From: Adineta vaga
Taxonomy: Eukaryota > Animalia > Rotifera
Direction of reading: 5' to 3'
Length of the DNA: 64,000 nucleotides
Assembly (NCBI GenBank): GCA_021613535.1
Contig: CP075492.1
Location: 7,750,001-7,814,000 of the forward strand
Below, in pieces: positions 10,316 through 22,654 of the stretch. Made by a program: the position numbers and the translations under genes. Position 1 is the stretch's first letter. Each line of letters opens with the position of its first letter. The notes beneath the pieces were generated by a model. That model was not told where the DNA came from. It made no database searches and saw nothing but the letters and a program-made list of their open reading frames with translations.

Positions 10316-13300
10316 TCATTTCATTGTATCCAGTGAAGTATTACTCAACGTAGAGGTCGAATGTCTTTTTTGACTGATATACACCTAAATAGACAAAGTT
10401 AGTTAGTAATCTTTAGTATAAATTTATCTTACTCGATTTAGTGCTTCAAACAATTGATCAATTTTCTTAGGAAATGTTTCAACTGAATCAATATATTTTA
10501 CTCGTGATAGCTCATCATTGAATTTCATTTCACTGGATTTTCCTAATCCTAAAAACACCAAAGAAATTACTTCGTACAAAATAATACAACTATCAGTCTA
10601 TCTCACCGATCCATTGTCGGAACTTTTGAATCATATATTCCAATACAACTTCATCTTTATTGTTAGTGTTGGTATCGTCACGAACTACTCGAAAATTATC
10701 ACTGATAATGGTAACAAACATACTCATACAAACAAAGACGATCAATAAAATGAACAAACTAAAAGCAAATGGTCCAAGAAATGGTGCGGCATCTTGTAAT
10801 TCATGTGCATCGAATTTCATTAACATCATTTCAAATAACATTTGTGCTGTATGTAATAATGTTGAACAACTCCACAATTTACCAATAAATAATAAGTAAA
10901 ACAATGCAAGAAATGCCATAAATACAAAAGAAAACATTCCAAGGAATGAAATCAAATCTCGTCGTGCATGTTCTAATGTCTTTGTAAACAAAGACAAACG
11001 TCGATGAAATCGACAAAGACGAAGAAATTTCAATGTACCGAAAAAACAACAAAAACCAAGAAGATATGTTAAGACATCATTGATATAATTTGTCAATTGT
11101 AAATTTATATAAACATATCCATTCGTCTCTCGAAATCGATTACCAATCGATATTGATTGATGATATCGCCAGATATAAACACCTAAAACACCCCACGAAC
11201 AACCAATTATACCAACATCAACATAACTCCAAAAATGATGAAAATATGAACATTTCAAATGAAGAAATCGTCGAATTTCATGAATCATATTATAAATAAC
11301 AAATAACATATAAATTATTGTACAAATTAATTGAAATGTTGATGTAAAAACTAAATAAAACGATAAGATTCAATCAATTTACATCATAAAGATAAATTAA
11401 ACAAACTTTGAAATGAACTTGGTTCAAAACGATATTGTGAAATTAAACCACCTGTTGATAAAAATTCTGTTAGAAATATTCCTGAAGTAAATAAATCAAT
11501 ATTTGGATTATATAATGTTAATTGAATAAGTATTGCTCTTGTTTGTTGATCAATCCAATTCCATCGATGAAGTTCAGATAAATTACTTTGTAATTCATTC
11601 AATCGTCCACGATATTCATAAATAAATCCATTAGAACTATATGTTGCATGATTACCTATATACATATATTGATCAAATTTATTATTCAATTCATAAATAA
11701 ATGCTTGTTCAATTGATGAATTCAAATCTTCTCTTTTTCGATTAGTTTCATTTATCCAACCAATTTGAAATGATTGTTTTTCTTCATTTAACAAATTATA
11801 ATCTTCATTACATTTCGATGAAATTTTACTAAAACATAAATTCTTTTTCACACGTAATTGTCTCATTAAAACTCTTCCAATCAATCGATTTGATTTATCA
11901 TTTATAAAACCACTTAGATTTCTTGCTGCATTACCATTATACCATTCTTGTGCACGAATATTTGATACAAAACTTCTTTCTAACCAATTCCAATAATTAT
12001 CAATTGTTGAAATCTATTCATATACATATTTATATTTAGTTATTCAATTAAAACAATCAAATTACTTTTCGATAATCTATATCGATTTGTCGAGAATTTA
12101 AAAAGAATTTTTCTAAATGATTTACTTGAAAAAATGCATTTGAATTTATATTTGAATAAGTTATCAAATAAATCAATGTTAAATAACAAATATAATTCAA
12201 TGTTTCACGAATAATTTCCCACATTCGAATCTCTTTCAAACGAATATCACGAGCATTTATTAATTCATCTTCATTTAAACGATTAACATCATTTCGATTT
12301 CGATTTCGATTTCGATTAATCAATGAAGATACTTTCTAAATTTATTAAATAATCTTTTATATTTAAATTAAATATTTAATCAATAAAATAAATAACCTGT
12401 GATGAATGAAGATATTCTTCATTTGAATTTAGATTAAAATCATTTTCATCTTCGAAATATTCAGCTGCTTCTTTATCTTTATCAGATTTACGAATAAAAA
12501 ATGCAAAAAAGATTGCTAATGCAATGATCTAGAAAAAAAGAATAAGAATAACAATGATTAAATAACTTTCTTATACAAAAAAACAAAATCATCTTACTTT
12601 CAATGGTTGAATAAGTAAAATCGATGAAAAGAATCCACTTACAAGTGATGTTAACCATTTTTGTATTTTAACATCACCAAATTCAATTCCACGAACAATT
12701 ATAAAAAATGATGAAACAATAATTATTAGAAATGATAAACCATATGCAATAAAAATATACCACCATGGAAAAATTAATCTTCGTCGTTTCTTTGTTGTTA
12801 ATTCAATTCTAAATATAATTAAACAAATAATATTCAACAATCTTTCGTTCGTTCATTTTCTTTCATTAACAAACTTTTTAATTGGTTCTTGTTTGAGTTT
12901 TACAAGTGTTTTATACAATGGAGATTGATCATCTTTACATTGACGAAGTGAAATTCGTCGAAATAATTCAATCAATAATAAACTTGGAATAAATGAAAGA
13001 AGTTCAACAATAATACCAATACTAATCTAAACATTTGATTTTAAAAATAAAAATGTTTTTCTTTATCATTTAAATTTGAGAAAAGAATTTCTACTTGTTC
13101 ACGAGTTAGAAGAAATGGTCCAAATGAAAGACTTCCTGTTATTTGATTTGCTTTTGCATTATTCATTTGATCATAATAGAGAATATTCAACAACATTGAA
13201 GTAAATAATAATACAAAACAACATGTACATCGTTGAACACGAGTAAATTTATTTGATGGTGGACGAGAAAAGATTGAAAACCATAAATGACCTTCAGACA

Positions 13301-16300
13301 TACTATGATAAACTTGTTTTGATAATAAATAAGAGAATTCTTGTTTTTGTAAATCACCAGCAATTGGTAAAATACGTTCAATCTAAATCTCATTTTTTTA
13401 TTCTCAATAATCTATTCAAAAAATATAATTACTTACACGACCATCATCTTTTTCTACACCAAACCATTGTTGACAAATAAAATAAGATTTTTCCATTGTT
13501 TGTAAATCACGAATGATTATATATTTCAAAAACCATGATGCTTTTCCACCTTCTCCACTATTATTATGCCATATTCGAATATAATTCAATGATCCCAATG
13601 ATCTACAAAAGTAATATTTCATTTACATAAATAATCATATGTTATCTTTACTTTGGAACACTTAGAATAAATGCATCAATTCCACCACGTTGTAAAATCT
13701 TTCGATTTCCATCATCAAATTGACGAACATTTGTTTCATCTTCATTACCCACAATAATAAAATGAACCTATCAACAAATATATCAATTCTTTTCTCTTCA
13801 TTTTTAGATCTTACTTTTGAATCTGTTCCTGCATCTTTTCGATGACCAGTAAATACCAAAATTTGATAAAAATATTGATCATTATGATAATTATCAGCTA
13901 ATGGTGTTACACCTAATTTTTCTAAATCTTTTTTATCTTTATAATGTGCATAAATCATGATCAGAATATAAAATATACAAATACAAATAATTGTTAAATA
14001 AATTGTTTTATTTCGAACAAAATCACCATTTGTAAAAACATAATTCCAATTAATTGGTGATGGTAAAACAAGAAATCCACCTGAAAATGTTGTTAAATGA
14101 GTTGATAAACATTGTGTTTGTTTATGATTTGTTTCAGATCCAACCTTTAACAAACAAATCAATAATTTCAATAAGAAATTCAAACAATATTTACTAATAA
14201 TCCTTGTGTTTGCCAAATATTCTTATTATCTAAATAATAACAACACGATGTATAAGTTCGAAGTTCATAATTTGAACTAAAATTAAATCGTTGATCTGTT
14301 ATTAAAAGATTATTTAATGATTGATTTGTACATGTTGTTTCATATTCTGTTGAATTTAATTCTCGTAAACCATAAATTATTGATTGATGACCAAATGTTT
14401 GTTGATTATTAAGAAAATATTCATAACGTTTATTCGAAGTCAAATCTAAATAAAATAATTCTATTGAATTAAATCAAACAAAAATATGAAAACAAACTTA
14501 AAGGACAAAAATATGTCCATCCATCAAGAAGAGATATTGAATTATTCAATTGTGGTGATTGATCAAATCGATAAATTAATAAATAACCAATACTTTCATT
14601 CAATGGTTTCATTTCAAACATTAATGCAACACTTCGATTATTATTCCATCGTGATTGAGCATATTTTACAAAATGAAGATTAAACATTTGATTGTGAGAA
14701 GAAGAAGAAGAAGAAGAAGTGTTTCCATTCGATGTTGTAACATTTTGTAAAGTCATTGATGGAATTTGTAAATTTGGATCACGTGGAATAATTAATTCAA
14801 TTCGATCATTTAAATCTGTTGTAATTGGAATTTCATTTCCATTATGATCTAAGATTGTCAATGAAATACTTCGTGAAAGATTTGTATTTGATATTAAACC
14901 ATTATCATCAGATAATGCAAGTGATTGAACAATTGACTAAAAGAAACAATAAAATTATATTCGATAATTTTATTATATAAATCAAAACGAACTCGAAGTG
15001 AAATAATAGAATGATTATTATTTATTAAATGAATACTTGATGGAATAATAATATGTGCATCACTTGTTTGTTCAATTCGTTTATTTAATAATGATGAATT
15101 TAATATTATTTCCATTTGATAAAATATTGATGAACAATTAATTGTCATATTTTGACCAAGATTTAAATGAGTTTTCATTGTATTACTGATCAATGAAATA
15201 GTTTCACTCATTTTATTATGAATTGTTTTTGATAATTGTTTTTGATAATAATTATTTCGACCTTTTTCAATTGTTTCCCATGAAAAATCATTTTTATCAG
15301 CAAATAAATCTAAACACATCAAATCAAATCTTTTTAAACATCATTCATTCATTCATTTCTCATCATACTTGGATTGGACCATTCAGAATCAAGATCAGTA
15401 TCATAATCAATAGGAAAATCATTTGCATCAGACCAATCTTTATCAAGAATACTTGTTCGAACTTGTAATGGACCATTTACACTACTCAACACATTATTTA
15501 TACATTCACTTAAATATCTTCCTACAATTTGAACATCATCCGAAGAGATTCTTGTACTTTTCATTTGTAATGCTAATGCTAATTCATAACATTTATTCGA
15601 TACAATAGTCTATCAACGAAAGGAAACTAGAGAAATACAATCAATCTTATGACATTACCAAAGAATTTCGTGTTAATTGATTTGTTGCTTTAGTAAACTG
15701 AGCTAATGAAGATGATTGTAATTTGATACTTTCAATTGTTGTAATCGACAGATTTGTCATATAACGAATAAGAAGATCTCGAGCATTTGCATATTTATTC
15801 AATTGTTTATTGTATTCAATAAGAGCAACAGTTGTATTCAATACACCAGATAATGACTACAAATACATAACAAGTGAATCTATAAAACAAACAATAAATA
15901 TCACAAAATAAACTTACTGTTTGTTGAGTTTTACTATTTAATGATGAGATAGATATTGTGGATATAGGAATACCATCTATATGAACATTATCATCTTGGT
16001 TTTTTTATAAAGTATATCGACAAGATTACTCACTTATCAAAGCATTTTCAATTGCTTGATCATTGATCTTATTGAATTCATGAGATAATGATGTTATTAT
16101 TTGACTAATACGATTTTGATTTCCACTTGCAAGCATCGAAATAAATGAATTATTTGTAGAATTGAGAAAACTTTCTATTTCTTCAAAATTTGATTCAACA
16201 AATACAGATGATATATTATATTCAGTAACACAATCATATATATCACGAATATTTGCAACAATATGTAATAATGATCCATTCTCATTTGTACCAGATAAAA

Positions 16301-19300
16301 GAACTTCATTTGTTGATAACATTGAAAAAGCAATCATTACTCGATCCGATTGATCTGTTCTCCATCCTATTCAAGAGATTTATACAAGACATTTCTTTCC
16401 TTTCCAGAATAGAATAAATACATACCATAAAATGAATAATCTTTGATTCCATCTGCATCAAACCAATTTGAACATGAAATCGTAAATAATGTACTTGTTG
16501 TACCATTCGAAGGACTTATTGAACAAGAACCATTACTTGGTGGTTGATTCATTATAAAATTTAATGCACTTGCACTTGATCTGTTTCCGAACCAGTAAAC
16601 AACTTCAAATCGCCAATATGTAATCGAAGGATTCGCAAGAAATAATTGATTTGTTGCTGTAAAATTATTTGTATTTATACCTAAATCAAATCAATATTTT
16701 TAATAGCATATGACTAGTAATGTGATAGCTTTACCGAAAAACCAAATATCTCGATAAATATTCATCTGATTGAATAAACTCCATTGAGTAACATTAGATG
16801 AAACATTCACCGATCCTTGATAAATATTCCATGAAATAGAATCAGCTTTTGAACAATTATTTACACAAACTGAAAATAATGCTGCTTGTGTAGTTGGATT
16901 CATATATTGATATTCAACATTTGGGATACACATTGTCGAAATCACACAGCTAAATCAACATTACTCTTATTTATGTATAGAATAGAACGAAAAAAAAAAC
17001 AAACTTACGCAACGGCTATCAATGGAGAATGAGTCTCTTCTACATGTACTATAACATAACCAGTTGCTGTCAAAGAAGAATTTTGACGATGTGTCATATG
17101 AACCATGATTTGATATGTTTCATTTGAAGAAAATGAACCTGCTAGAATGATTAGTGAAGATTTGGGTGATAGGATTGATCCATGATATTCTAATCCAGAT
17201 CCATTTTCTGTTTTCAAAATAAAAAAAACAACAACAACAACTGAGATTAATCAGAAAACAATCAGATATAAGACAACATACTTGATTGATTTGCGAAACA
17301 TGATGGATTCAGTGAATCAATTCGAGAATCATCGATAGTTAACAGTGTACCATTAATATTTGGAAATGAATACCGATCAAATATTCGACAATAATAGTCA
17401 TAATTCCAATTCTATCCAAGAAAAAACAGTCGAAAGTGATTTTCTGGGTGATAATTGTATACTTACAGTTGCATTAAATGTATCAGAATCTGGATCAATA
17501 GAATATGCACCTGGATTCAATAGTAAATCTTGTTGATATCCATGTGCAATCATTAGAGTACCAAATTGAATTAGATTGGCTGTAATATTTGATGGAGTGA
17601 TTTTAGCATAGATCAAAGCAGTAGAAGTTGAGTTTGGAAAGGTTGCCATTGTCACACTGAGCTTGAGTTCATAGATGCCATAATCGAGACTATTGGATGG
17701 AATAAAGAGTTCACTTTGTGTAGTGATTATCGATGAATCAAGTTGAATATCGGTTGAACAAGTCGATGAACATTGCTTCAGTGTCCATTTAATAATTGTA
17801 GAAAGTGATGGATTACAGTTTAACTGAAGATAAGAGAGCAAATATACACTCTGGCCTCGTTGATATTGTAATGGTGATAATAGGCTTGACGGATTCCCAA
17901 ACAGCGTAATATTCGGAGATTGACAATCTAAAAATATAAAGCAAATTAGAAGTACTATTTTTTAAAATCCTTAAAAACTACTATAATTTGCTGATAACAT
18001 TATAGATGTAGTTGTTGTTGTATTTGCCATTGTTGAAGTTGAAGCAGAAGTATTTGTGGTAGTGACAGTCATTGTGCTGGTATCGGTGGTTGTTGTATCT
18101 GTAGTGGTTACAGTCGTCGTACTGGTGCTAGTAGTTGTCGTATCTGTGGTAGTGACGGTCATTGTACTGGTATCGGTGGTTGTTGTGTCTGTAGTTGTCA
18201 CGGTGACTGTACTAGTGTCGGTAGTTGTTATTGTCATTGCTGATGATGAGAACGTCGTAGTAGTGTCTGTGGTAGTTGTAGTTGCTAAGAGTAAAGTAAA
18301 ATTAATCGTTTCCACGGTGAGCAATTTTGAGAATGAGAATAGATGTTTGCCTCTGTAATCATTTTGTGGAAACTCAAAAGATTTAGTCGCCTATTTTTAT
18401 TTGCTTGGACGAGAAAACTAATTTTTAAATTCAACAAGCATCCTATATGGAAATTACAAAGAGCTTTAGCACAAAATCAATGCAAATTGCCTATAAATAA
18501 CACTAATGTAACTAAATGCCACAAAGAAGTGTTGTGCGTCGTACTAGCGAATCATTTCCTCTAACACACCGTATCTGTATAGAAAAGAAAGACCACTCAT
18601 TTTATCCTATTTCTGAACTTTCAGAGCTAATCCATTATAGTCGAAAGCAAGACGAAAGTATAAACTTAATATGCATACGATCTAAAAACCACATATCATT
18701 CTTCCTCTTAAAAAACAATTCAGATTAGAATCATGTTTGATTTAGATCATTTTTTCGGAAGAAAACTAAAGTTAATTACCGAGACCGTTTGATACCGAAA
18801 AAAATTTTTGAACTCGGTTATTACTCAGATCGACGACCAAAATATTTCCATCATTATCGAAAGCCATAGTAGTCGGTTGTTGTAACGTTCCTTGTGGAGA
18901 ACTTGCACCTGAACATCCAACAATGCATTGAAAGCCGGAAGGTCCGTTGCCAACAATACGATTTTGATTACAGTCAACGATGTATAAATAATTATCCATA
19001 TCGAGTACGACACCCGACGGAGCAGCTAATGATATACCAACTGGTGGCGAACCACCGGCTACTGTTGTTGCGTTTAATTCTCCTGACAAAAAAAATTGAA
19101 CTCGATTGTTATAACTATCGGCAACATATAAATTAAGAGAAGCATCGACAAAAATGCCTCTAGGTGTATATAGTCCATCTGGTCCGTATCCAACAAGCCG
19201 GTACCTGCAACGACTCTCGATCCTATATAAATTGGATCGTTCAAAGATTTCATTACAACTTGATGAAAATTTGCTATAGAGCAATACAGTCTATTGGTTG

Positions 19301-21100
19301 TATCGATAAACAAACCATCACATTGATCACTAACATACATAACAGGAGTGCCATTTACACTATTTAATGTCCATTTATCTATTCGACCATTGTTACCATT
19401 ATCAACATAGATATCATCAGTGCTTGTAACAAAGATACTTCGTATAGTTGCTGAACCGGTAGAAATGTTTTTCACGGATTGGCTGCTACCTTCAGGCCAT
19501 ACTTGAACATTTTGATAAATAGGCGAAGATACATAAACAGTATTGTTTGAGGTAACAAAAAGTCCGTTTAAAGTCCATCCGATAAAAGTTTCATTTATAA
19601 TAGTTAACGCATTTGGATTCCAACTGGGATTTGCACCGAATTTTGGTCGATTGTAAGAAATAACTAGAAAATGAACGAATTTATATCAAATTTAAAATTG
19701 ACAGAAAGGAAATCTCCAATCATATTAAAGATTTGATAATGACTGTGTTCATTCTGTGAGTAAATATCCTATCTATATCATTCTCATCCTATTAACATTT
19801 CTTCGATATAGGTAGATCTACTTTGTATAAGTTAATCAGCTATTAGAAACAATGTTTTATCACATACCTCCATTGTAAGATATATTTGAACTTAAAGTTG
19901 TCGTTACACTACTCGTTGGTATTCCTATGAAAAGAATCAAAAATAATCTTCATTCAATATTATAAAAGAAATACCCGTAGTTCCAGTTGCTGCTGTTGTT
20001 GTTGTAATCACACCTTTGCAAAGAATATACATTACATAAGATAATTATAATACTTTTGGATTATTCATTTAAGTAGATAAAATCATTAGAAGAAATACAC
20101 TTACTACATGAATTCGTTGCTAAATAAAATTTTTGAATACGAGCATTTTCCCAATCAGCAACAAATATATTTCCATAGTGGTCAAATTGAAGTATACCAG
20201 GAAACGATAATTGATTCGGCATTTTGCCACGTCCGTTACACCCGACCAAACAACGAAAACCATTTGCTCCAGATCCGAGAACTCGATGATTAGAACTATC
20301 AACAATAAATAAATATCCATCGAAATCGAGTACAACTGAACTCGGACATTTCAATGTAATATCTGCGGCTCCATTTCCAGCTACTGTTGTTCCATTTAAC
20401 TGATCTACTTTGAATACTTGAATTCTATTATTACCACAATCCGCTACATATAAATCAAGATTTGTATCAACAAAGATTCCTCGAGGTGTGAAAAGCATAT
20501 CTGCGGCTGGTCCTGGACAATTTTTACCTGCAGCAGTACTAAATGGGTTTGGACTATTATCCAATATTTTTTTAATAACTATGTGTTTATCTTGGATGGA
20601 ACAATAGATAGTATTATTGATATCTACGAAAAGACTAAAACACGGTGCACTGATAGGCGCTACAGGTGAACTATTTGTTGCCTGTAATCTCCATTTATCT
20701 ATTCGCCTGTATTGAACACCCATGTCAACATAAATGTCGCCGTTGTCAGTAACAAATAAACTGAATGAATTGCTTAAATTATCGGAAATATTTCGATCCG
20801 GATAATTTTGTCTTTCGAGCCAAACAAATATTGTATTCAAAAGCGTTGAAATATAATAGACTGAATTGTTACTACTAACAAAAAGAGAAGAAGAATTTAA
20901 ACCGACTGTATTGTTATCAGCAAAACTAATAGCAGTTGTATTCCATGTTGCATCGGAACAAAGTTTCGGTCGATTGTACGATAGACCTGTAATAAATGTA
21001 GATATTAAATATTCAGAACTATCAATAGAAGTTAGAAATACATACCTGTCGTCTGACTGATTATCAATAAAGTAAGCAGACAGAAAATTAACTTATTCAT
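10316..21100 (-). CDS. Polycystin-1-like (PKD1L/PKDREJ-type) receptor-channel: signal peptide, two NHL-repeat modules, Thr-rich stalk, REJ, GPS, PLAT/LH2, TM and PKD channel domains; many exons; frameshift in NHL module 2
   Basis: ATG at 21100 gives signal peptide MNKLIFCLLTLLIISQTT. NHL exons lie at ~20986-20105 and ~19663-18780 (PRGIFVD..LYVAD..NNRIQ). Then a Thr-rich exon (~18285-17984), REJ exons (LNPGAYSIDPD, PPSNGSCSISP..GT), GPS (CYYLD..WQTQGL/VG..T....TQCLSTHLTTF), PLAT (YQILVFTGHRKDAGTDS, LGSLNYIRIWHNNSG), HLWFSIFSRPPSNKFTRVQRCTCC, and the channel region (LRQLRV-like MRQLRV, WIDQQTRAILIQLTLYNPN, LGPFAFSLF). Last exon ends ...DTMK* at 10316. Confidence 0.88.
18050..18285 (-). repeat. 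Imperfect ~45-bp tandem repeat encoding a Thr-rich mucin-like stalk (unit ~TMTVTTTDTTTTDTS)
   Basis: The 15-aa unit recurs about four times in the 17971..18324 ORF, between the NHL modules and the REJ region. Confidence 0.85.
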
Positions 21101-22654
21101 TGATAGTATTCTTTTGATTGAATACTACAAAGAAATGATAAATCGCAAAATAAAACTTTTAGAACTAATGTTATTTGAGAAAATGGACGAAGTGCCGTTG
21201 ATAAAAAAAATGTTCTCATAAGTTTTTTATTATTTATTGTCTATGATCGAAGTTTGTTTTAATAAAATATAAATGTTCTAGAAACTGAGTTTTTAGTCTC
21301 AAAGATATAGTTTTACTAGAAATTTCTTTTCTTTTCAATAAATATTAAATGAAGTAAAAACGGATATGACAAGACAATGAAAGTCACAAATTAAAATGAA
21401 ACAGTTTGAGAAATGATACTAAAATTATAGAAAACTTTAGTTTATAAGGAAAGAAATACCTGGATTCTTTCATTTTAATAACAAATATTGTTAGAATAAG
21501 ATTCATTGTTTTGACGGATGAAATTCTAATTTGAAATATTCTATTAATTTATGTTATTTCGCATGAGATCATGTTTTTTGTGGACATATATACATTTTCC
21601 GAACAACTTCAATATTTACAAGCATCTCGTGAATAGTAGAAATATATACCGGAATAAGGAGTATTGACATCAGTTGAGTTCAACTTTTTATCAGCGAAAA
21701 AAATCAATTTTAACTTTAATTTTTTTTTGTTTGTTCTTGATGAAAATATTTACATCATCAAAAATTCCATTTATAAAAAACTTCTTCTTAAAAATCTGTT
21801 TTAATTAGTTCTGAATCTTATTATTGAGACTAAGCCGATATATCTACATGCATAATTCTTCCGAAAATCGAATATTATTTTTAAATGATCGTTCACTCCA
21901 CGTTTAGCTTCCTAATAATCTCTTTTTATTCTCAAAAGCAAGTATTCCAGTGTACAACAAATAATTCATATTCCTTCGCTATTTGTTCCAAAGAAACTCT
22001 CTGAGGCAGTTTTATCACGATGGAAATTGCATCCCTTGTTGAACTAAAAACTATACAATGTATAATAGCACTTCGAAATAAATGTATAGATGTATTCAAT
22101 TGTTAGATCAAGAATTAATCGGAAAGTTGTAGTCGTCTTTACAATATGAAATAAACTGATGTATATATTTGAATAAGTTAGAAAATATGAGCAGTTTGAA
22201 TGTTAGAATGAAAACCAAAAATAACAAAAAACGAAAACAAGAAAAAAGAAACACAAACGACACAAAACAGTTGTTCTAGTTTTTTGGTAATGCGAGTTTA
22301 ATGTACATCTTATCTAACTACACACATATACATTTCTATCTAAGAAATACATTTCAATGTATGTCATCATATCTCTATATACAATAACAATGCACAAACT
22401 TACATACATACAGAAGAGAAAGAAAACACTAAACACCAAAAAATGTTCACTAAGTGGCATAGAAGAAAAAGCACACAGACAAATACATACTAAGAATGTA
22501 TGTGGATAGACAAATAAATAAATAGAAAAACACACACAAATACATTGATATACATATATTGAAAGACAGATGAAGAGAAAAAAACATCTCTTCTTCTTGT
22601 TTATCGATTAATTATAATGAAAAAAATTTTGTGTTGGATGTTGAAATGTTGACA

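Follow-up and report, generated by a model that had tools for sequence, protein, structure and literature searches.

A probable polycystin-1-like receptor subunit with two NHL propellers, from an expanded gene family of the bdelloid rotifer Adineta vaga

It has long been asked what PKD1-type polycystins sense with their large ectodomains, a question touched by a locus on chromosome 3 of Adineta vaga where NHL propellers stand ahead of a polycystin-type body. The window, the whole stretch of DNA analysed here, is 64,000 nt long. We consider it likely that its minus strand carries a single 28-exon gene for a PKD1-type (polycystin-1-like) receptor subunit with 11 transmembrane (TM) segments and two NHL propellers, for which a sensory role is proposed. 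The gene model extends from 21100 to 10593 and comprises about 2,782 codons (Table 1), with canonical splice sites throughout, no in-frame stops and a frame that closes at the terminal stop codon, beyond which 10316-10592 is at most 3' UTR. Apart from a frame break in the second propeller exon (NHL2), the 8.3-kb coding region is intact. The 27 introns range from 47 nt to 495 nt, the longest separating NHL2 from the Thr-rich stalk exon. The RNA-type contig X1 record 8 spans 21044-21157 and is joined to exon 2, with the donor of exon 1 (GTATGT) in phase 1 and a hydrophobic N-terminus. Exons 8-28 were modelled under the guidance of a paralog's deposited protein, P0177, with edges placed at canonical sites; P0177 is the model of a truncated duplicate of this gene, and a word search found only P0177 matching the window and no database model of this very gene. 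An in-frame stop at 12853-12855 was considered as a second defect and rejected, as it lies inside a canonical 66-nt intron that is also removed in the paralog's model. All the parts listed by an earlier sequence-only reading (signal exon, NHL1, two mini-exons, NHL2, Thr exon and REJ) were found within 1-2 nt of where it had placed them, and Pfam scans of the individual exons identified NHL, REJ, PLAT, Polycystin_dom and PKD_channel.

Table 1. Exons of the NHL-polycystin gene and the modules assigned to them, in window coordinates
Exon(s)	Feature	Position	Strand	Details
1	5' UTR and signal peptide	21046..21157	-	5' UTR to at least 21157; coding 21100-21046, ATG at 21100, 18 codons + 1 nt
2	NHL propeller 1, whole in one exon	20105..20986	-	882 nt, phase 1-1; Pfam NHL E=1.4e-16
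3	Thr-rich linker, 13 codons	19975..20013	-	39 nt, phase 1-1; X2 record 12
4	Ser/Thr linker, 19 codons	19868..19924	-	57 nt, phase 1-1; X2 record 12, also X1
5	NHL propeller 2	18780..19663	-	884 nt vs 885 expected, phase 1-1; Pfam NHL E=2.7e-18 after the break
6	Thr-rich mucin-like stalk	17982..18284	-	303 nt, 101 codons, phase 1-1; joints 18780|18284, 17982|17927
7-17	REJ module	14498..17927	-	Pfam REJ; exon edges guided by P0177
7-11	REJ module	17927-17467, 17411-17282, 17207-17009, 16949-16735, 16680-16426	-	
12-17	REJ module	16366-16034, 15976-15918, 15856-15659, 15609-15369, 15309-14993, 14936-14498	-	
18-19	GAIN/GPS end with HL/T, then TM1	13815..14445 (14445-14195, 14144-13815)	-	Motif, hydropathy
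20-21	PLAT	13437..13767 (13767-13652, 13602-13437)	-	Pfam PLAT E=3.9e-09
22-25	TM2-TM5	12397..13382 (13382-13095, 13026-12875, 12808-12598, 12528-12397)	-	Hydrophobic segments
26-27	S1 and polycystin (TOP) domain	11407..12335 (12335-12066, 12013-11407)	-	Pfam Polycystin_dom E=8.5e-30
28	S2-S6 with pore region, stop codon 10595-10593	10593..11350	-	Pfam PKD_channel E=5.5e-33

Analysis of the transcript contigs placed NHL exons and REJ-channel exons in a single transcript chain, with splicing followed from the signal exon to REJ. Six GT..AG junctions, leading from the signal exon through NHL1, the two mini-exons, NHL2 and the stalk to REJ, were seen in the RNA-type runs X1-X3, and none of the six was present in the DNA-type run X5. 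The RNA evidence consists of short assembled contigs of depth 2-5, each bridging one to three junctions. The joints 21046|20986, 20105|20013, 19868|19663 and 17982|17927 (stalk to REJ) are present in both X1 and X2; X2 record 12 holds NHL1, exon 3, exon 4 and NHL2 in one contig with 0 mismatches; and X3 record 13 joins 18780 to 18284 across the 495-nt intron, in frame and at canonical sites. In addition, RNA contigs lie within exons 7 and 11. All six junctions are in phase 1, as the sequence-only reading had maintained. The other 21 junctions of the gene are mixed in phase (11 in phase 0, 7 in phase 1 and 3 in phase 2), so six consecutive phase-1 junctions are not the gene background. No alternative splicing of the NHL heads was seen in the RNA contigs.

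Both NHL modules open with S-Y-N-R-P-K ... W-N, a shared start already recognized in the sequence-only reading. The AlphaFold2 model of the NHL1 exon alone (pLDDT 92.6, pTM 0.92, about 25 strands) found its best Foldseek matches among six-bladed NHL propellers, namely Pizza6, Thin, Lin41/TRIM71, TRIM2/3 and the PknD sensor, with TM-scores of 0.71-0.80 on the query and up to 0.88 on the target and Foldseek E-values down to 2e-15. Exon 2 is thus predicted to fold on its own into a six-bladed NHL propeller. The module has four invariant cysteines and one further cysteine near each end, occurs more than 1,000 times in the Adineta vaga genome, and is a single symmetric phase 1-1 exon in 24 of 25 modules; symmetric exons of this kind, which make duplication as cassettes possible, are found in extracellular modular proteins. 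Behind the two propellers, the stalk exon contains four tandem copies of a 45-nt unit, encoding a 15-aa repeat, on which a Pfam scan gave no family; the Thr-rich repeats are probably O-glycosylated. The NHL propellers of TRIM-NHL proteins (Thin, Lin41/TRIM71, TRIM2/3), the PknD sensor and teneurin have the same fold and Pfam NHL repeats as those described here, and like the PknD and teneurin domains the rotifer propellers would be extracellular. Unlike these proteins, however, the rotifer protein has no RING, B-box, coiled coil, kinase or YD shell. A place among the TRIM-NHL proteins disagrees with the signal peptide preceding the propellers and with the lack of any RING, B-box or coiled coil Pfam match on any exon, and a place among the teneurins with TEN_NHL scores of 22.6 and 22.3 bits against a cut-off of 27.1 and with no YD or Tox-GHH match.

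The body behind the stalk resembles the PKD1 family (polycystin-1, PKD1L1-3, PKDREJ and sea-urchin suREJ) in its REJ, candidate GPS HL/T motif, PLAT, 11 hydrophobic segments, TOP domain and PKD_channel unit, whereas the distal ectodomain of that family consists of LRR, WSC, PKD-repeat, C-type lectin or SUEL domains in place of two NHL propellers on a Thr-rich stalk. Pfam REJ (PF02010) matched 17467-17925 (E=4.9e-12, profile positions 3-116) and a second piece at 16367-16552 (E=6.2e-10, profile positions 311-368). The GPS motif, C-L-S-T-H-L-T-T-F, lies 25 residues before TM1, a hydrophobic 19-mer, and 11 of 12 paralogs retain its HL/T. The motif is divided between exons 18 and 19, which is why Pfam GPS remained below threshold on a single exon (E=0.064, 14.2 bits vs a cut-off of 22.5). 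Judged from this motif, GPS cleavage is plausible. The PLAT match (PF01477) falls on exon 21, after the TM1 exon. Hydropathy by exon revealed 11 hydrophobic segments in PKD1 order, beginning with TM1; exons 22-25 contribute four, exon 26 S1 and exon 28 S2-S6, and a further, marginal segment lies in exon 27, close to where the polycystin-domain match ends. The predicted topology is accordingly that of an 11-TM protein whose last six segments are TRP-like, with the TOP domain between S1 and S2. Alignment of exon 28 with human polycystin-2 was free of gaps (E=2e-19) and placed L-M-K opposite the L-G-D of PKD2; the Lys at the filter position is found in all 13 paralog channel exons. This L-M-K filter, together with REJ, GPS, PLAT and a length of about 2,782 residues, sets the protein apart from PKD2-type (TRPP) channels, and the succession of TM1, PLAT and a PKD_channel unit after the GPS, with no 7tm_2 match, sets it apart from adhesion GPCRs. 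PKD1L3 is a PKD1-type subunit that acts only with PKD2-type partners, in a 1:3 PKD1L3/PKD2L1 heterotetramer with a KDDD filter (PDB 7D7E; PMC8357825). Its selectivity-filter Lys opposite the Asp of its PKD2-type partners (PMC8357825) is similar to the rotifer L-M-K opposite the PKD2 L-G-D, but the sequence match to PKD1L3 is weak (E=8e-06) and the rotifer Lys column is aligned to PKD2, not directly to PKD1L3. By this analogy, we infer a PKD1-type sensory subunit with a filter Lys as in PKD1L3. The sequence-only reading had spoken of a polycystin channel; the channel-type domains are indeed present, and the term needs the qualifier that the filter position holds Lys instead of Asp. The presence of a PKD2-type gene in the same genome, at C2:13.895 Mb, favours this reading, whereas its filter, L-G-I-F-D-F and not L-G-D (one candidate read), speaks against it.

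Analysis of exon 5 revealed a defect missed in the sequence-only reading. In the window, the NHL2 exon lacks one base, and its frame changes at 19196|19195, where the open reading frames 19074-19475 and 18772-19284 overlap in different frames; an NHL-module HMM built here matches exon 5 at positions 1-156 and 158-294, likewise in two different frames. In X5 record 21, a divergent DNA-type contig, an additional base stands behind 19195; it brings the exon back into frame and puts a Cys where module 1 has a Cys, so that another run contains an intact NHL2 exon, from either another haplotype or another strain. The RNA contigs leave 19028-19211, including the break, uncovered. The window allele may be a null allele, with a premature stop at 19076-19074, or an assembly error. 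A 26-nt mini-intron (gtaccgg...accag, ~19205-19180; 3n+2) with GT and AG ends and a length that would restore the frame would make the window sequence correct and the gene intact, but we rejected this as hardly credible: the shortest of the 27 introns of the gene is 47 nt, the removed stretch aligns with conserved module columns, the exon would become 858 nt, unlike the 882/885-nt modules, and a natural variant restores the frame by one base at exactly this place. It is possible, if somewhat doubtful, that the deletion is real in the window haplotype and the locus a decaying copy, in which the protein is truncated after 1.5 heads and the mRNA enters nonsense-mediated decay, as part of a birth-and-death turnover of heads and genes in the family. 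Consistent with such decay, exon 5 has 884 nt where phase 1-1 requires 885, an internal frame change occurs in 4 of 26 NHL modules across ten genes, a 5'-truncated duplicate of this gene's body (97.4%) lies 140 kb away, and NHL-less members are nested among NHL-bearing ones in the tree. Yet the remaining coding region is intact, the exons on either side of the break are transcribed and correctly spliced, the missing base is held by the DNA contig of another run, and a polishing error could account for a single-base indel where a repeated family is assembled from long reads.

Beyond this locus, one to five NHL modules stand just upstream of REJ in at least 30 of 46 REJ starts in the Adineta vaga genome, which agrees with the family of variable receptors inferred in the sequence-only reading; the 33 paralog loci were covered by sequence from 26 stretches and otherwise by coordinates only. 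Among the 147 best NHL matches, 61 have a REJ start at most 8 kb downstream of them in the same orientation, where 0.27 would be expected. Two to four heads are present in nine of the 12 paralogs examined in sequence, and 21 deposited bdelloid models combine one to four heads with REJ and the channel. Among public models, the NHL-REJ-channel architecture occurs under uninformative names in three Adineta and five Rotaria species or isolates; these models are often truncated, several beginning inside or after a head, and domain counts on proteomes will therefore underestimate the family. Bdelloids also keep the canonical PKD+WSC+REJ type (I4U23_008626 and relatives), beside which the NHL-polycystins are an extra, expanded branch. 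As the sequence-only reading had supposed, NHL is an unusual partner ahead of REJ-GPS-PLAT-TM: by Pfam it is absent from 22 long non-family polycystin relatives in a library of 1.84 billion proteins, where PKD, WSC or C-type lectin domains occur instead, and the NHL-module HMM found no NHL in 27 proteins of at least 1,000 aa from the same library search. The best 150 matches of this search, over 1.84 billion representatives, were mostly exon-sized fragments, with no bdelloid full-length model among them. The family thus comprises dozens of genes, so far found only in bdelloid rotifers, and our search of the literature on rotifer or bdelloid polycystin, REJ or NHL found no paper describing the architecture.

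Comparison of the NHL-module tree with the body tree revealed agreement wherever both are resolved and no supported conflict. The modules of C3:8.25M and C3:5.55M pair by position, those within C3:0.96M and within C2:0.73M are sisters, and the branches of the two window modules in the NHL tree are long and unresolved. Modules paired by position and sister modules reflect whole-gene and within-gene duplication, and no transfer of heads between genes was demonstrated. The sequence-only reading had described an exon-shuffled family with interchangeable propellers and had named tree incongruence as the sign of shuffling; the symmetric cassette exons stand, while shuffling between genes and interchangeability find no support in the trees. 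The head region has been lost or replaced in two genes that have no NHL and are nested among NHL-bearing ones; a Pfam scan upstream of REJ in these two paralogs gave no family. The family would have grown by whole-gene duplication together with in-place duplication, decay and loss of head exons. Heads are 49-69% identical among paralogs, compared with mostly 60-90% for the body; heads thus diverge only modestly faster, which is weakly suggestive of diversifying recognition. As in other cassette-built, lineage-expanded families of ectodomain receptors, there is one symmetric exon per head, one to five heads per paralog and recent within-gene duplication (C3:0.96M). The difference lies in the exchange of heads between genes, of which none was shown here, and in the alternative splicing of heads, of which the contigs gave no sign.

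In the proposed mechanism, the propellers, kept at a distance from the membrane by the stalk, would bind an external ligand, particle or surface; binding or pulling would reach the 11-TM body through REJ/GAIN, with GPS self-cleavage as a possible step. This body may act as the single PKD1-type subunit in a 1:3 complex with PKD2-type subunits and shape a cation or Ca2+ signal, the probable site being sensory cilia. This presupposes one protein. A secreted NHL-propeller protein and a separate REJ-polycystin, joined only by read-through or contig mis-assembly, would fit the position of the longest intron of the gene between NHL2 and the stalk, the deposited models that start inside or after a head, and the remaining 86 of the 147 best NHL matches, which fall in non-polycystin genes. 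The sequence-only reading had asked whether the NHL and REJ-channel exons are separate genes, and the contigs joining NHL2, stalk and REJ, with the canonical in-frame link of 18780 to 18284, answer against it; moreover, NHL2 ends without a stop codon, the stalk and REJ exons lack both a signal peptide and a start, and the same order and strand recur at at least 30 loci and in models from eight species or isolates, which makes two genes very improbable. It is unlikely, though a serious contender, that the same protein has another job in adhesion or non-self recognition (e.g. against fungal or bacterial attackers, or in attachment to a substrate or egg surface), signalling by a GPS tethered peptide and G proteins or acting only mechanically. 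PknD and teneurin-type proteins use extracellular NHL propellers for sensing or binding, in line with the fold matches; PC1 is discussed as an atypical GPCR (PMC9672506); the filter Lys argues against a pore from this subunit alone; and Arkhipova et al. placed NHL among the expanded A. vaga families for which they suggested defence, chemosensation and cell-cell communication (PMC3846280). Against this stand the 6-TM part, the TOP domain and S5-pore-S6, conserved at 50-60% identity across paralogs and free of visible frame breaks, a pattern that speaks for selection on the channel module too. The sensory PKD1-type subunit remains the preferred reading.

For the PKD1 family, these genes replace the usual distal domains with a compact and, as predicted, well-folded six-bladed propeller, multiplied into dozens of paralogs with one to five heads. 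They offer a natural series for studying the coupling of an ectodomain module to the REJ/GAIN/11-TM body, and the heads are small enough to be expressed alone in ligand screens. For rotifer biology, they are candidates for a sensory or recognition repertoire in asexual animals that have few neurons and a ciliated corona. More speculatively, and with no great likelihood, the NHL-polycystins might form a diversified repertoire of surface sensors in which each head has its own ligand or surface specificity and the cassette exons let heads be added, dropped or skipped, in evolution and possibly by alternative splicing. If so, receptor specificity would be tuned per gene or per transcript in animals without sex to reshuffle alleles, and the repertoires of chemoreceptors or of innate recognition would have a counterpart in this polycystin-based family.

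The NHL-polycystin gene lies in an AT-rich stretch (about 30% GC; G000:C3:7750001-7814000 in the 100.8-Mb, six-contig source assembly), with eukaryotic exons on the minus strand spanning 21157 to 10593. The gene model consists of 28 exons and 27 GT..AG introns of 47-495 nt, contains no in-frame stops, and its reading frame closes at a stop codon at 10595-10593, giving a coding length of 8,349 nt (about 2,782 codons, one missing base counted in). The ectodomain exons comprise NHL1 (882 nt), two mini-exons (39 and 57 nt), NHL2 (884 nt) and a stalk exon (303 nt). Exons beyond the first six junctions were placed by canonical splice sites, with P0177 as the guide; P0177 is the model deposited for a duplicate of 97% identity. 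Pfam scans, other searches and fold prediction were performed on exon pieces taken singly rather than on a joined protein. Exon-wise hydropathy analysis placed TM1 directly behind the GPS motif and S1 in exon 26; between them, exons 22-25 contain four segments, and S2-S6 follow in exon 28. This predicted order is identical to the 11-TM order of PKD1-type proteins.

Features of the NHL-polycystin gene and related loci (window positions unless a genome stretch, L0xx, or a contig of the assembly, G000, is named)
Feature	Position	Strand	Note
NHL repeats	20061-20840	-	Pfam
NHL repeats	18772-19284	-	Pfam
REJ	17398-17841	-	Pfam
REJ	16367-16552	-	Pfam
PLAT	13416-13622	-	Pfam
Polycystin_dom	11384-11884	-	Pfam
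PKD_channel	10593-11309	-	Pfam
Splice joint	21046|20986	-	RNA-type contigs
Splice joint	20105|20013	-	RNA-type contigs
Splice joint	19975|19924	-	RNA-type contigs
Splice joint	19868|19663	-	RNA-type contigs
Splice joint	18780|18284	-	RNA-type contigs
Splice joint	17982|17927	-	RNA-type contigs
Frame-changed head, C3:8.25M module 1	L001 5914-6794
Frame-changed head, C2:4.08M module 2	L014 390-1272
Frame-changed head, C3:13.94M module 4	L012 1902-2785
Truncated duplicate	L009+L010, G000:C3:7882873-7902872	+	97.4% identity to window body
NHL-less family member	L021/L022, G000:C3:2512943-2532942	-
NHL-less family member	L005/L006, G000:C1:13668973-13688972
PKD2-type gene	L025 1-1400, G000:C2:13895050-13896449	-	filter region L-G-I-F-D-F; EF-hand-like C-terminal tail

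Comparison of the region 15900-21400 with three RNA-type runs (X1-X3) and one DNA-type run (X5) revealed six joints in the RNA-type contigs and none in the DNA-type run, each joint being GT..AG on the minus strand. The RNA contigs are short, with a depth of 2-5 and one to three junctions each, and none runs end to end in one molecule. A single X2 contig (record 12) contains NHL2, both mini-exons and NHL1 with zero mismatches, X3 record 13 connects NHL2 with the Thr-rich exon across the 495-nt intron, and the joint from the Thr-rich exon to REJ is spanned in both X1 and X2. These contigs were assigned to the window locus, since paralog identity is only about 50% and the close duplicate has no such region. 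The six joints thus connect the NHL and polycystin exons in one transcript chain from the signal exon to REJ, which confirms the chimera proposed by the sequence-only reading and places these exons in one gene rather than in two separate ones. Its claim of phase-1 junctions from the signal exon to REJ also holds for all six, and the later junctions are of mixed phase (11 phase 0, 7 phase 1, 3 phase 2). In the intron after exon 9, X1 (RNA-type) and X5 (DNA-type) contigs both diverge from the window at 17004 and continue with an unrelated sequence of about 240-255 bases that is common to the two, and the X1 depth nearby is unusually high (69.8 at 16990). This departure may represent a haplotype insertion or sequence common to another expressed locus.

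When the NHL1 exon was aligned to 24 modules of paralogs, identities were 41-51% and 34 columns were invariant, with four invariant cysteines and one more near each end. The predicted NHL1 fold (pLDDT 92.6, pTM 0.92) contains about 25 strands, and the structures that it matches best are NHL propellers with six blades; the model resembles the Pizza6 designs, Drosophila Thin, Lin41/TRIM71 and TRIM2/3, as well as the extracellular sensor domain of PknD. The single-exon fold and its six-bladed matches indicate that one exon encodes one propeller. A phase-1 AG acceptor stands immediately ahead of module residue 1 in 24 of the 25 modules, and a phase-1 GT lies at most 3 codons from the module end in all 25. 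NHL1 and NHL2 of the window share 46% identity, and both are located on long, unresolved tree branches.

The NHL2 exon is one base short of a multiple of three and carries a frame shift at 19196|19195 that was missed by the sequence-only reading. An X5 DNA-type contig contains an extra base exactly at this spot (the RNA contigs do not extend over it), and adding this base makes the NHL2 frame continuous and places a Cys at the position matching that of module 1. This contig shows 12 differences from the window over 565 positions and therefore derives from another haplotype or strain; the window NHL2 represents a null allele or else an error of the assembly. Removal of the frame shift by a 26-nt mini-intron is very unlikely, as no intron of the gene is shorter than 47 nt and the sequence concerned matches conserved module columns. 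Internal frame changes were found in 4 of 26 NHL modules, window NHL2 included, reflecting either assembly indel errors in a repeated family or the decay of single heads beside an intact body. A join in an X5 contig leads from 20906 (in NHL1) back 2605 positions to 18302, just ahead of the stalk exon, with a depth of 88 and a shorter side of only 36 letters; it may reflect tandem duplication of the block of two heads in another haplotype, or a join induced by a repeat.

Across the genome, 1,126 candidate places of the NHL module were counted, and the best 147 were scored, every one with E < 1e-56. Among these 147, 61 are located no more than 8 kb upstream of a same-strand REJ start (0.27 expected by chance). 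At least one upstream module was found for 30 of 46 REJ starts, with 1 to 5 heads each (lower bounds), which bears out the proposed receptor family. Thirteen paralog loci were read, twelve PKD1-like and one a PKD2-type gene. Heads (2-4 each) stand immediately ahead of REJ in nine of the twelve, and one is a 7.1-kb copy of the window gene that is truncated at the 5' end. This copy begins inside the first REJ exon, is devoid of signal, NHL and stalk exons, and is annotated as a 1,964-aa protein (I4U23_013233, P0177). This inverted segmental duplicate matches window 10571-17666 at 97.4% identity about 140 kb away, with an unrelated Arg/Gly-rich ORF upstream. A second inverted NHL-polycystin pair about 100 kb apart, G000:C3:8147778-8159527 (-) and C3:8244437-8256215 (+), with at least 3 heads per gene, parallels the window gene and its truncated copy. 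The remaining two loci carry, ahead of REJ, a long stretch rich in Thr/Ser and several open exons that match no Pfam family. Because both open with a related F-x-G-G-x-(I/L)-x-W motif, they may bear a second, undescribed head type.

Comparison of the module tree with the body tree revealed concordance wherever both are resolved, and no supported case of head transfer between genes was found; the idea of interchangeable, exon-shuffled heads was therefore not borne out. In the body-tree sisters C3:8.25M and C3:5.55M, the four heads pair by position, indicating whole-gene duplication. The heads of the sisters C3:0.96M and C1:16.47M group in a single clade; within it, the pair from C3:0.96M are mutually closest, indicating duplication of a head within the gene. 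Head number has also changed, since C5:0.80M has two heads and its sister C3:13.94M has four, and the nesting of the two NHL-less genes among NHL-bearing ones indicates that their head region was lost or replaced. Across three sister pairs, heads are somewhat less conserved (49-69% identity) than bodies (mostly 60-90%).

The GPS HL/T motif is retained in 11 of 12 paralogs, making self-cleavage of the NHL-polycystin plausible at the sequence level. The channel exon aligns gap-free with human polycystin-2, with L-M-K opposite the L-G-D of the PKD2 filter, and Lys occupies this position in all 13 paralog channel exons read. In the structure of the 1:3 PKD1L3/PKD2L1 complex (PMC8357825), the filter is 'KDDD', with one PKD1-type Lys and three PKD2-type Asp. 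The window Lys resembles that of the PKD1-type subunit, and by analogy the NHL-polycystin would be the single receptor subunit of a 1:3 complex with PKD2-type subunits. PKD2-type genes are present in the genome; the one read on C2 is only a candidate partner because the acidic residue in its filter, L-G-I-F-D-F, comes two positions later than in human PKD2. A propeller ligand, protein location and ion conduction of the NHL-polycystin are putative properties that we infer.

Word searches seeded with two family members retrieved predicted NHL + REJ + PLAT + PKD_channel proteins from A. vaga, A. steineri, A. ricciae, Rotaria socialis, R. sordida, R. magnacalcarata, and Rotaria sp. Silwood1 and Silwood2. 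With a purpose-built module HMM, 21 deposited models contain 1-4 near-complete heads, a REJ start and a channel. The occurrence of such models in Adineta and Rotaria indicates that the fusion is at least as old as their split; the canonical PKD+WSC+REJ polycystin-1 type coexists in the same species. Several deposited models, P0284 (I4U23_022401, 2,863 aa), P0286, P0310, P0315, P0317 and P0319, combine NHL and REJ with a 7-TM domain of rhodopsin type (PF00001) or have NHL and REJ but lack PLAT or channel. In this genome, the 10 kb around several REJ starts with 2-5 heads likewise contain no channel exon (e.g. C5:1921264, C3:16443695). Shorter architectures may thus be genuine, or the gene models may have been merged or cut. 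A channel-exon query of 1.84 billion cluster representatives gave 27 matches of at least 1,000 aa, none with this NHL module. Pfam NHL was likewise absent from the 22 of them that were scanned, a small sample not specifically covering monogononts or acanthocephalans, in which PKD (7), WSC (2) and C-type lectin (1) domains were detected. No description of the architecture was found in the literature searched, the sole related statement being on an expansion of NHL-repeat families in A. vaga (PMC3846280). The NHL-polycystin is a receptor of the PKD1 type whose ectodomain carries propellers; it has expanded in bdelloids, and its database entries have uninformative names (only 'hypothetical protein', 'unnamed protein product' or 'PLAT domain-containing protein').
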